From Chrysemys picta bellii (Eukaryota): 64,000 bases of DNA. Made by a program: the position numbers and the translations under genes. The stretch lies in the NCBI RefSeq assembly GCF_011386835.1, contig NC_088791.1:149730001-149794000 (forward strand). The letters run 5' to 3'. Of this stretch, positions 1,243-17,769 are shown in pieces. The notes beneath the pieces were generated by a model. That model ran no database searches and was not told the DNA's origin. It saw only the letters and a program-made list of their open reading frames with translations. Position 1 is the stretch's first letter. Each line of letters starts with the position of its first letter.

Positions 1243-1323
1243 ATGAAGCAGCAAAGTCGGAGGAGAAAAAACAAGGAGTGCGAATGAGCCTCCAAGACAG
1301 TAACGAAAGCCAAGCTGAGGAAG
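1243..1323 (+). CDS. Candidate 81-nt phase-1 exon of unidentified host gene (DEAAKSEEKKQGVRMSLQDSNESQAEE)
   Basis: Acceptor ttgtctttcccctttcAG, donor AAG|GTGTGT, length a multiple of 3, open in phase 1, conserved in the paralogous copy at 7366-7446. Confidence 0.62.
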
Positions 1324-1487
1324 GTGTGTGTGGCTGTCAAATTTTGGCCAGAATTGAGGCACAGAAGTGAGGGAATGAGCAGCCAGAGAGAGAAGCCCAG
1401 GGTTGTAGATATAGAAACAGGGTCCTTATGAAGGGATAAGAGGGGATGAAACTATCACTGTTGCGAAGCGGAGTGGGAGGGAGGGTT

Positions 1488-2070
1488 TGGGCTAGATCCA
1501 CAAAGGGGCTTAGGTGCCTGTAACTAGGGTTTAGGCACCAATGTCCTGGTTTTAGCTGCCACTGCCTCTGAGCATGCCAAGCTCTACTCAGAACGGGTGT
1601 GGGAAGGAAGTGGCAGTGTCCATCCTCAGAAGCTTTAGCCCAGTGGTTAGGGTACTTACCCAGAACGTAGGAGACCCTGGGTCAATGCCTGCCTCTGCCT
1701 GCTATCTATAGGGCACCTAAGCCATCTGACAGTAGAAGAGGGGTTCCTGGCCGTGGGTTGCAATCAGGGAGAGGCCGCCTCCCTGCTGCCTGGATGTAGG
1801 TGCCAAATCCATGAGAAGGGTGTGGCTTAGGATACACCCTTCTCTCCCCATCTCCCATTGGCTAGCTTAAGCCTCCCCCCTCCACCTGGCATGCTGGTTT
1901 TTGTGAATCCCATTCTTGGATTCTCCCCGTTCATTGTGTACGATGCCAGGGTGCCTAACTCAGCCTCTGTTGATTCAATCGTTGTTTCAGTGATTTTTCT
2001 AGGCCCCTAAAAGTTAATGGTTTCACAGCTGCATGTTGCCACCCCTTCATCCCTTTGTGGCTCCAGTCCT
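1488..2070. mobile_element. MITE-like element with ~19 bp imperfect TIRs and an internal tRNA-like cassette
   Basis: gggctagatccacaaaggg ... ccctttgtggctccagtcc. A-box-like TAGCCCAGTGG near 1636. Absent from the homologous intron downstream of exon 11896 (spacing differs by about its length). Second copy at ~7598-8160. Confidence 0.6.
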
Positions 2071-2417
2071 TGCAGACGGAAAAAGGGGAGGAGAGGGGGT
2101 TTCCATTGCTGGGAGAGAAGTGGCCTGTTGCTCAGCAAGGGAATGAGGGGAAGGGAGCATGAAGGTCAGTGATGGTGAAGCTGGGTGTGGGGACTAGGAG
2201 AGGAGGTTTGAAGGCAAGTTGGAAAACAAGAAACAAGACAATTCTACAGGAGGTGCCTATCGTACAGTGCTTCACTTTCTTTGATTTCTTCAGCCTGTCC
2301 CTGCTCCCCTCTCTGCTCTGGTGTGTTCACGTGGTTACTTGCTGATGTGCTTCTGCTCTGTGTGTACAGGGCATTTCTGGAACATTACTGTTCATTAGCC
2401 TGTCCACTAAAGCAGTG

Positions 2418-3284
2418 GTTCTTCTTCGAGTGATTGCTCATGTGTATTCCACGGTAGGTGTGCGTGCTCGCCACGTGCACCTGTGCTGGAAGTTTTTCCC
2501 ATAGGAGTACCCATAGGGGGGGAGTGTCCCCTGCCCGGGGAGTGTCCCCTGCCCCTGGAGTGGTGCCTGCCGGGCACGGTATAAGGGGAGCTGTGCACTC
2601 CCCGCACCCTCAGTTCCTTCTTACCGCCAGTGAAGGTGCTTTGGAACTGCCCTGCTCCAACTTCACTGAAGCTCGTCACCAGAACTGGTCGTTTGTTTAG
2701 TACCTGTAGTTAGTTAGCTGAGTAGTTAGTTTAGTTAGTCAGTGAGCCCGGGCCAGGGCATGCCCCGAGCCCCGGGATTTAAGTCATGCGTTTCTTGTCA
2801 GTGTTGTATGCTAAGAAGCGACCTGCACACAGACTGTTTGCGCTGTTTGGGAGAAACAGCGAAAGGTGCAAAATTGGCAAATCGTTTAAGCCCCAGTCCA
2901 AAAGGGAAAGATACTTGAGGCTCCAGGCCATTCTGCTGGAGTCGGCGCTGACCCCGGCACGCCACTCCGAGCCAGTACCGTACACTGCGGTGTCGGTACG
3001 CGGCGATCAGCCGGTGCCATCAACCTGTCGGCACCGCTCCCCGTCCACGGGACACGCCAAGAAGAGTCCCTCCTCGCAACGGCACTGAGGGAAGTCTGGG
3101 AAAGAGGCTAGGCCCATGTTCGGCAGTCCTCGATCCCCATCGGGCCCCAGACCTCCGACTCACATAGAGTGGAGTAGCCCGGCCCCTTCGTAACAGGCCT
3201 GTCCGGATGTCTGGATGCCTTCTACAACTGAAGTCGCCCAGGACGTCATGTCCATGCCGGTGCCCGGAGTCCTGCCGATGTCAG
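2418..3284 (+). mobile_element. DIRS 5' end, copy 2 (terminus GTTCTTCTTCGAG, terminal repeat, gag-like ORF start with Cys-rich finger)
   Basis: Starts at GTT 2418; TATA-like tataag ~2579; ATG at 2760; decayed ORF includes C-rich motif and SERCKIGKSFKPQSKRERYLRLQAILLESAL. Confidence 0.88.
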
Positions 3285-15000: not shown

Positions 15001-16044
15001 ACTCAGGTATTGAATTCACTAGAAGTTCTTTCAGTGCTTGAACATGTTGCATTGCATTGTTGGGCTGGCTCAATTTGGTAACAATATTGTTCTCCCTCTA
15101 AAGAGTGCAGACTGAAAACCTGCCCTGGGAAAGGGGCATGGCGTGATGTGATATTAGGACATGAGAGCTTTGTGCCAAAATGTTTTAGTTAATACAAACA
15201 GCAACCAATTTTAAACAGTCTGGGGGGAAAAAGCACTCTTCTAATGATTGGGTTTCACTTCCATGGTGTCTATGATGCCATAATCCTACAAATTCTTCCA
15301 CCTGAATGTGCCATGTAAATTAACATGTGGAATTAAAAAAAAAAATCAGGCCCCCATTATACATCATAATGAAGTGAGAAAGGGCACAAACTTGTTACAC
15401 ACTCTGGAAAGTAATTATTTTAAAAGATTATGAAACTACCAAGTAACTGGCATGTACTTTCACTGTAATTCTTTTCTACAGCCTGTTTATTTCTGTGCAA
15501 TTGCTGAAGATTGTTCCCAGGCGAATCAAAGAGAAGGGTAGGCTGCTTAGCAAAGAAAGAGCAGTTACTCTTTATCCATACCAATAACCTGGGTTTCAGC
15601 AAGGAGTGGAGAAACAGGAATGAGAGGAGGTTTAAGGGTTATTGGTGTTTTTTTTTTTTTTTTATGTGCAATCTGTTATAAATGTGTGGTGCTTCATAAA
15701 GCAGCATTCCAAAAGTTTAATAACAGCTCTTTACAATTCTGTGGCACCTTAGATTAGACTCAGATGAGGCAGACAGTGTGTCTGGGAATCAGTGCACAGA
15801 ACTGGGAATCAGGAGACCTGGGTTCTCTTCCTGACTATCACTTGCTCACTGTGTGATCTTATTAGGTAGGTTACTACTTCTATGTGTGCCTCACACTCCC
15901 AGTCTGTAAAATGGGGATAATAAAATGATCTTTATGAAATGCTTAGAGAACCTCCAGTGAAAGAGGAAATATAAATATAAAGTATTATGATAGATCCTGG
16001 CTCCTAGTCCAGTGCATTAGCCATGCTATACTCTCCCTTTTCTT

Positions 16045-16340
16045 TGGGTACATCTATGGTGCAGCTGGAGGTGTAATTTCCAGCTCGGATAAACATGCGT
16101 TCACTTGCTTTGATCGATTTAGCTAGCTAAAAATAGAGTGCACCTGCGGTGGCCTGGGCGGTGGCCTGGACTAGACTCCTGAGTACAGTCCTGTCTGAGA
16201 GCCTACCTACGTACTCGGGGCAGCTAACCCGTCTCTCCGCCTACATGGCCACAGCTGTGTTGCTATTTTTTAGTGTGCTAGGTCAATCGGAGCTCTTGAG
16301 CTCAATCATATCTCCCCGAGCTGGAAAGATACATCGCCAG
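16045..16340. mobile_element. Harbinger-type MITE (degenerate GGGTATGTCTACAC-like TIRs)
   Basis: gggtacatctatggtgcagctgg ... ccagctgcagtggagacatcacc. Related MITEs at ~17898-18196, ~46790-47112, ~58012-58300, ~59890-60070, ~63179-63305. Confidence 0.6.
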
Positions 16341-17734
16341 CTGCAGTGGAGACATCACCTTAGAAGTTTTAGAAAGAGAAATCTCATCTTCACCACACTA
16401 AGTGATGGCTTGAGAACATTGCTGGAAAAGGGGTGCTGGTGAGCTCCATGAAAGTTGCCAAGCAGACTTAGAAAGGAATGTATTTATTTTCCTTGTTTTT
16501 TGCAAAGCATGAATCAAAAACCAAATCTGTACCATAAGCAATATGACATCACCTAAATAAGGCATGTCAATAATCCAGTAAAATCTCTTCCCTTCAGTTC
16601 TACTTTCATGCACTTTGACACACTTCGGGCCTGATTTTTTTTCTTTTCAGATGTGCTGAGCACCTCAGCTCCCATTGAATGTTGGTTGAGTTGCTGGTAA
16701 TCAGCACTTCTGAAAATCTGGCCCTAGTTGGGAACCTAAAAATTGAAGCATCTAAACTTAGTGGCCACTTTTTAAAATGTAAGCCAAAGTGACTTGCCAA
16801 AGTTACATGTAAAGTCTGTGACAGACCCAGAAACAGAATCCAGATTTCTTGACACCCATAACCACAAAACTTGCTTTCCTCTTTTGATATTGGATACCAA
16901 TCCCTTAGCATTCATTGAATGACACATCTGACTATACAAACTAGGTAACAAGAAAGTGTAACAAGCACATAAATTGAATGAAACCGCTTTAAAAGCAATG
17001 GGCCAGATCTCAGTTTGGTATAAATCAGCACAGTTCTACTGAAGCCATCAGGGAGTGTCTGGCCCAGCTGCTGGGATCCTGCCCTGACTAGAGGGAGCTG
17101 CACCTGAAGGTATGATGGGGATGTAACAGGGCAGACCAGTGGTATGTTCCAAGAACTATCCTGCCAGTGCTGTGCATAATAGTTGAGGTTGTGGTCGTGC
17201 ATTGTCTTGCACATTTTAATACTCCTTCAGGGGCTGATCCAACTCTTAGTAAAGTCATTGGAAAGATTCCTGCTGTCACCGGTGATAGTTGGATGGGTCC
17301 TTAAAGGGCAGTTGGAATCTCCTGTCTCTGTGACTCTATCTTTTGTTAAGCCAGTCACATGCTCTTGTTATGAGTAGCTTGTTTTCACGAACCTCCTTCA
17401 AAGTCTCATCTCTTTTTCCTTTGGGTAGAGTAGCACCCCCCCACCCCCCAGCCTTCCTGAATGCTGGCCTCTTCAGTCAGTGTCTTACACCTGGGCATCA
17501 ACTCTGATGGGTTCGGGTTTTTGTGCAGTCAGGTTACATTAATGTAGAGCACTAATGAGTCAGGGCTGGTTAATTTACTGCCCTGCCTTTCCACTCAATG
17601 CAAGTGAGCTATGTAGCAGTGCACCGAAACAAACATGTCCCACACATCACAAAATCGCTGTTTAGGTTGCTACTAAACCAGGTTTCCGTGGGATGCTATC
17701 CCATGTGTCACATTTTTTATCCCTTTTTACGCAG

Positions 17735-17769
17735 GAGTTCCTGAGAGTAAAGAAAGAGTATACCATTAA
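17735..17769 (+). CDS. Candidate terminal coding exon (GVPESKERVYH*)
   Basis: Acceptor cacattttttatccctttttacgcAG; phase-1 frame joins exon 13467-13502 and ends at TAA 17767-17769; AATAAA at 18048-18053. Confidence 0.52.

Follow-up and report, generated by a model that had tools for sequence, protein, structure and literature searches.

Which gene do the small, mutually similar exons at the start of a 64,000-nucleotide stretch of Chrysemys picta bellii DNA belong to, and what do they build? The stretch, called the window here (RefSeq assembly GCF_011386835.1, contig NC_088791.1, positions 149,730,001 to 149,794,000 of the forward strand), contains no runs of N. A first-pass annotation, made from the letters alone, had joined five segments between positions 1243 and 17769 (E1 to E5) into an acidic tail carrying a tyrosine motif, DYENI, and had held that the gene could not be named from the window. 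We found that the exons belong to the CD58 (LFA-3) gene, of which they are the distal coding part. The best explanation of the locus as a whole, which we regard as very probable, is that the cytoplasmic tail of turtle CD58 has been assembled from duplicated symmetric cassette exons, and for this tail we infer a possible role as a docking or sorting platform. The gene and its exons, including four of the five noted earlier, are already in RefSeq, and the explanation is mostly an ordinary one; the amplification pattern is a modest addition to what is known. The earlier observation is thus partly confirmed, and its interpretation partly supported.

Identity of the gene and layout of its product

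The exons were used singly as database queries. In an exhaustive search of 1.84 billion proteins, E1 (query from window 1239-1328, 30 amino acids) gave one match, XP_053899267, 'lymphocyte function-associated antigen 3 isoform X3' of Malaclemys terrapin, with an E value of 1.8e-21 and four matched stretches. This match named the gene, which the first-pass annotation had thought impossible. A follow-up search listed CD58/LFA-3 models for many turtles, and E1 to E4 were 100% identical to the RefSeq CD58 isoforms of Chrysemys picta bellii itself (XP_065428875 and sister isoforms, labelled X1-X10). Pfam gave no match to the single exons, and a word-index search with the E2 genomic open reading frame returned no candidate within its length window. 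CD6, LAT/LAT2, CD79A and CD22, considered at first for their YxN or YDDI-like C-termini, were dropped as candidates after E1 had matched CD58.

The position of the gene was then given by its own locus. Window 1-30890 is 100% identical to positions 67380-98269 of the locus of CD58 isoform X1 (L001, from GCA_011386835.2, CM062318.1). The gene spans 78 kilobases (kb), its final 21 kb fall in the window, and its end maps to window position 20890. No neighbouring gene was found within L001.

The predicted product has the layout of a membrane receptor. The AlphaFold model of the turtle protein contains two Ig domains, one V-like and one C2-like, with a predicted local distance difference test score (pLDDT) of 85-96 over residues ~25-205, and Pfam I-set/Ig_3 matches were found in the ectodomain. 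Model and sequence together point to a helical N-terminal signal peptide and a single transmembrane helix at residues 214-239, followed by a basic K-R pair. The tail of isoform X1 comprises 322 residues, the last ~100 of which (residues 461-560 of the protein) are encoded by the window exons. Because these exons lie after the transmembrane helix, they encode cytoplasmic sequence, which bears out the earlier suggestion of a leukocyte-receptor tail. AlphaFold predicts no secondary structure in the tail (pLDDT ~40).

Family assignment was examined by sequence and by fold. A phmmer search of PDB matched CD58 at 6.8e-8 and 1.2e-6 (1ccz being the best specific match), CD48 at 3.6e-4 and SLAMF6 at 2.7e-3, with CD2 unlisted; the sequence margin for CD58 over its relatives is modest, at ~21% identity. 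The top Foldseek hits were NTB-A, CD58 (1ccz), CD48 and CD2, and a turtle profile search retrieved bird and bat proteins named LFA-3. These comparisons identify the turtle protein as CD58/LFA-3, a CD2/SLAM-family member with two Ig domains and type I topology in the membrane, and as such it would be expected to bind CD2.

Duplicated cassettes and their number in turtles

All five segments lie where the first-pass annotation had placed them; they are in phase 1, and their borders are AG and GT. RefSeq splices E1 to E4 in the frame proposed there and then continues to one of two ends. E1 (1243-1323; on the + strand, like the other exons and the duplication units of the window and the retroelement) is an 81-nucleotide cassette that we call A-type; it has phase 1-1 and AG/GT borders, corresponds to residues ~461-487 of isoform X1 (P0034) and is skipped in isoform X3. 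E2 (7366-7446) is a second A-type cassette of 81 nucleotides and a recent paralogue of E1, and its orthologous copy in Malaclemys is 100% identical. E3 (11896-11967) is a B-type cassette of 72 nucleotides, also of phase 1-1; five turtle loci retain both its length and its open frame. E4 (13467-13502) is a C-type cassette of 36 nucleotides that encodes DYENIS and is the only exon of its type in the Chrysemys gene, compared with five copies in Dermochelys.

The earlier claim that the introns around these exons are mutually homologous was confirmed by self-comparison. The unit containing E1 (744-2404) is 89% identical to that containing E2 (6834-8498), and the unit containing E3 (11089-12125) is likewise 89% identical to one at 13959-15000, which contains a truncated B-type copy, E3p (14775-14842). 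Between the two pairs, the sequence to either side of the exon is ~68% identical. E1 and E2 recur with a period of 6.1 kb instead of ~2.4 kb because a retroelement (3470-6833) inserted between them; its reverse-transcriptase reading frame lies at 3852-5276 (Pfam RVT_1, E = 6.9e-12). That reading frame is broken into overlapping frames, and 185-base-pair repeats flank the insertion (3285-3469 and 6834-7017).

Copying extends well beyond the window. The gene as a whole holds nine copies of the ancestral exon, three A-type (27 residues) and six B-type (24 residues), four of which lie in the window, so that the figure of at least four copies made in old and recent rounds, given by the first-pass annotation, stands as a lower bound. 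Eight of the nine are open and 72 or 81 nucleotides long. The cytoplasmic cassettes measure 45, 90, 63, 72, 72, 81, 96, 72, 72, 81, 81, 72 and 36 nucleotides, and every one of these is in phase 1, a multiple of three and bordered by AG and GT. The only exons that are not multiples of three are E3p (68) and two others introduced below, F (53) and T (29), all of them terminal or alternative-end exons. The tail region consists of nested segmental duplications of 84-99% identity over ~37 kb. Taken together, the sequence comparisons support the derivation of all A- and B-type exons from one ancestor, in older and more recent rounds of duplication. Immediately before the window starts, L001 53674-57159 and 64362-67797 form a segmental duplication of ~10.7 kb with 96-97% identity; it carries two B-type exons that encode the same protein sequences in both copies.

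The ancestral unit consisted of an acidic exon of 24-27 residues and a DYENIS exon of 12 residues, and repeated tandem segmental duplication amplified it into cassettes of 36-96 nucleotides. Since all cassettes are symmetric, the gain, loss or skipping of a copy leaves the reading frame intact, with the result that the tail varies in length from one turtle lineage to another and among predicted isoforms. Across the ten RefSeq isoforms, which are predicted models, inclusion differs by whole cassettes: X3 lacks E1, X10 lacks E1 to E4, and X5 and X9 lack another cassette. Predicted isoform labels in Mauremys mutica reach X17. Short cytoplasmic exons that are alternatively skipped, with a change in signalling motifs, are also known from the tails of PECAM-1 and FCRL-type receptors; those exons, however, are not known to be recent tandem copies of one another or to vary in number between close species.

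Copies were counted in five turtle loci, the comparison among species that the first-pass annotation had called for. Chrysemys has three A, six B and one C cassette, Malaclemys four, six and one, Emys one, two and one, Chelonoidis one, three and two, and Dermochelys one, five and five. Thus A-type copies range from 1 to 4, B-type from 2 to 6 and DYENIS-type from 1 to 5. Together with the skipping of cassettes in RefSeq isoforms, this agrees with the accordion-like variation in length suggested earlier. The turtle models retrieved have tails of 93-375 residues. The CD58 tails of swan and hummingbird contain no repeats, and that of a bat is short.

In a tree of 23 units the A clade is deeply separated from the B clade. 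Emydid copies in corresponding positions group together, Chrysemys with Malaclemys, and two Chelonoidis B copies are each other's partner, which indicates lineage-specific amplification. In Dermochelys, five near-identical tandem pairs of B and C exons occupy L005 51967-66962 with a spacing of ~2.8 and 4.0 kb, all with Ser in place of Tyr. This array appears to have been amplified recently on the branch leading to the leatherback.

How far does this go beyond what is known of CD58? The transmembrane form of human CD58 has a tail of 12 residues and still signals, and a glycosylphosphatidylinositol (GPI)-linked isoform exists (PMC8218816). The turtle protein resembles it in having 1ccz as its best specific PDB match, in its shared fold and in alternative 3' splicing that yields different C-termini. 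It differs in its tail of 93-375 residues with duplicated cassettes, and we found no evidence of a GPI form in turtles. In zebrafish Cd58 and other non-mammalian CD58 proteins, extra exons lengthen the cytoplasmic tail, in reptiles and birds by 41-121 residues, and the authors suggested that CD58 itself signals (Shao et al. 2018, PMC5990624). No exon amplification, turtles or YxN cassette are described in that paper, and the tails of turtles are longer by a factor of up to about three and vary in copy number. Our literature search found no paper on turtle CD58 or on amplification of tail exons.

A CD58-like protein of Crocodylus porosus (P0050) also has an acidic tail, with a unit of ~27 residues present twice; the unit contains a sequence, EPFNEIN, that resembles the DYENI/DYENIS cassette. 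It has Phe for Tyr and two copies only, and the resemblance is one of motif.

The cytoplasmic tail of turtle CD58 is ~25 times the length of the human one. It grew by tandem duplication of symmetric cassettes, whose numbers differ even between turtle families, and it illustrates that disordered receptor tails can change length with the reading frame intact.

The tyrosine motif and constraint on the tail

The composition of the tail was considered next. It carries a net charge of -21, is rich in Ser, Glu, Lys and Gln, and contains 21 CK2-type S/T-x-x-D/E sites. There are two tyrosines, and DYENI (in E4, 13467-13502), which lies in the predicted cytoplasmic, disordered segment (pLDDT ~40), is the sole YxN motif. 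YENI fits the pYxN consensus of the Grb2 SH2 domain, is near the pYEEI of Src-family SH2 domains, and fits the YxxPhi consensus of AP-2. Chrysemys, Malaclemys, Mauremys, Gopherus, Macrochelys, Caretta and Chelonia each retain D-Y-E-N in a single cassette.

From these features the tail might act as a phosphorylation-regulated docking or sorting platform, through which turtle CD58 could signal or traffic in ways closed to the 12-residue human tail. The adaptors LAT and LAT2/NTAL likewise combine a disordered acidic cytoplasmic region and many small exons with D/E-Y-E-N-hydrophobic motifs. They differ from turtle CD58 in having almost no ectodomain and several conserved YxN motifs, whereas the turtle protein has an Ig ectodomain and one YxN that is not universal; no sequence homology was found. 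A functional YENI would mean that signals pass both ways at the immune synapse through turtle CD58, a point of relevance to the published proposal that CD58 gradually gave up signalling of its own on the way to mammals (PMC5990624).

Several points weigh against the explanation as a whole. The use of the exons rests on RefSeq/Gnomon predictions. The tyrosine is not universal: Chelonoidis has CENI, Dermochelys has SENI in all five copies and Pelodiscus has SENT, while Emys has YEYI, which is not a YxN motif. Extra copies of the C cassette carry Ser or Cys in place of Tyr, and the Dermochelys and Pelodiscus models retrieved have no C-cassette tyrosine. The loss of the tyrosine in duplicates and in several lineages weakens the case for Grb2-type docking at YENI, which is possible, not established.

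Substitution rates point the same way. B, C and T exons diverge at the rate of their flanks, with exact length and open frame kept in five species, and the A exon diverges faster than its flanks. Against Chelonoidis, E1 differs at 22 of 81 positions and its flanks at 13 of 200 (Fisher p = 1e-5). Identity is 73-77% for the A-type exon as against 86-94% for its own introns (window 1243-1323 and 7366-7446; L003 57459-57749; L004 47360-47658), and two sequence forms of the A exon are distributed against the species tree. E1 and E2 differ at six of 81 nucleotides, with five replacement changes and one silent. Rates equal to or above those of the flanks indicate that the exact sequence of the tail is under little constraint.

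This brings in a serious rival, neutral growth, under which tandem duplication of symmetric exons is merely tolerated in a disordered tail, bulk charge or length alone matters if anything does, and YENI is incidental. The exon rates, the ratio of replacement to silent changes between E1 and E2, the wide variation in copy number among healthy lineages, the repeated loss of the tyrosine and the repeat-free tails of bird CD58 would all be expected if this were so. Neutral growth accounts less well for the preservation of frame, exact length and splice sites in eight of the nine copies and in five species, while the flanks gain indels, or for the retention of one Tyr-bearing cassette in most species although the duplicates lose theirs. 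We consider it a real possibility, though not a probable one.

YENI could also be a sorting signal. Read as YxxPhi, with Ile at +3, it may be recognized by AP-2 and, together with CK2-phosphorylated acidic clusters, may control endocytosis or recycling of CD58 instead of recruiting Grb2; the 21 S/T-x-x-D/E sites in an acidic tail are consistent with this. The variants YEYI in Emys, CENI in Chelonoidis and SENI in Dermochelys tell against it, and loss of the tyrosine abolishes YxxPhi as much as pYxN; we regard this reading as rather unlikely.

More doubtful still is the idea that CD58 turned, in turtles, from a ligand with almost no tail into a receptor for signalling or a decoy, with diversifying selection acting on the disordered tail itself. 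That proposal, which we judge improbable, draws on the fast A cassette, the independent expansions in separate lineages and the replacement of Tyr by Ser in extra copies. If it were true, a diversifying tail would fit an arms race with a tail-binding pathogen factor, or phosphoserine look-alikes that tune a single phosphotyrosine site.

Alternative ends of the transcript and other features

The assembly of the tail from symmetric cassettes leaves the question of where the coding sequence stops. The first RefSeq end is E3p, the B-type copy cut to 68 nucleotides, which serves as a terminal coding exon with an in-frame TGA at 14804-14806 and gives the C-terminus EEEKNSSLNQ in isoforms X1 and X3-X9. 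Malaclemys models share this end peptide, and an identical stop is present in Chelonoidis. E3p might be taken for a dead pseudo-exon, a reading we rejected because the C-terminus annotated in three genera comes from the stop-bearing form and the stop has been conserved. An AG lying 11 nucleotides inside E3p would define a shorter exon of 57 nucleotides (14786-14842) reading through in frame, a form annotated in Mauremys. E3p may therefore switch between a 'stop' and a 'read-through' form.

The second RefSeq end, used in isoforms X2 and X10, is exon T (20862-20890), the canonical last coding exon, which ends in DLKLESETD with its stop at 20888-20890. A candidate alternative exon of 53 nucleotides, F (19537-19589), encodes the C-terminus of Chelonia and Dermochelys models and shifts the last exon to its second open frame, with a stop at 20904-20906. 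Its length is kept, and its identity is 96% and 91% where that of the flanks is 89% and 83%; it is unused in C. picta isoforms X1-X10. The frame also stays open beyond the E4 donor, at 13503-13570 (GMEKYRNVLDP...), and a homologue of this read-through is the end peptide of Gopherus models and lies internally in one Mauremys isoform.

The first-pass annotation had ended the protein elsewhere, with GVPESKERVYH from E5 (17735-17769), and this part of its five-exon model was not supported. The acceptor of E5, with a good polypyrimidine tract and AG, is perfectly conserved in Malaclemys and Chelonoidis, and its phase 1 frame is open in Chrysemys and Malaclemys. The CD58 models retrieved, which cover 17 turtle species, all lack E5, however; the annotated ends are E3p or 20862-20890, and a BLAST comparison of the Emys locus with the E5 region gave no match. 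Neither Chelonoidis nor Dermochelys retains the stop, Chelonoidis shows four replacement changes against one silent, and identity is 83-86% in the exon compared with 89-91% in the flanks. In Chrysemys the TAA stop runs directly into a genomic A17 tract. We rejected E5 as a terminal exon on the absence from models, the missing Emys match, the lost stops and the lower conservation relative to the flanks, and consider its use as a transcript end highly unlikely.

It is just as improbable that gene prediction created the cassettes, or that they are pseudo-exons without expression, and that the true turtle tail is short. All protein evidence is computational, and one Trachemys model is short with a different end. 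Even so, separate assemblies of 17 species and two sources (RefSeq and UniProt/Ensembl-type entries) yielded the same exons in independent predictions, and the splice sites, lengths and frame have survived deep divergences among turtles.

Some further observations concern the locus and the rest of the window. In older C. picta CD58 models (P0041, P0011-P0016), the IgV exon is merely 92% identical to L001 and the tail exons are absent from L001, which contains a decayed relative of one of them at 40172-40216. These models may come from a second CD58 locus or from a haplotype that has diverged strongly. Downstream of CD58, Pfam applied to 257 open reading frames of at least 60 amino acids (window 17.8-64 kb) recognized solely Harbinger-type transposon domains. 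These belong to remnants of a Harbinger/PIF-type transposon at 29068-29457 (+ strand) and 31183-31830 (- strand), with matches to DDE_Tnp_4 (E = 3.2e-13) and a Myb/SANT-like protein (E = 1.2e-17), which are the only Pfam-recognizable reading frames in that part of the window. Finally, window 46001-48000 is a G-rich block with a GC content of 0.605, a GC skew of +0.28 and low-complexity reading frames rich in Gly, Val and Trp, which may be a minisatellite or a CpG island.

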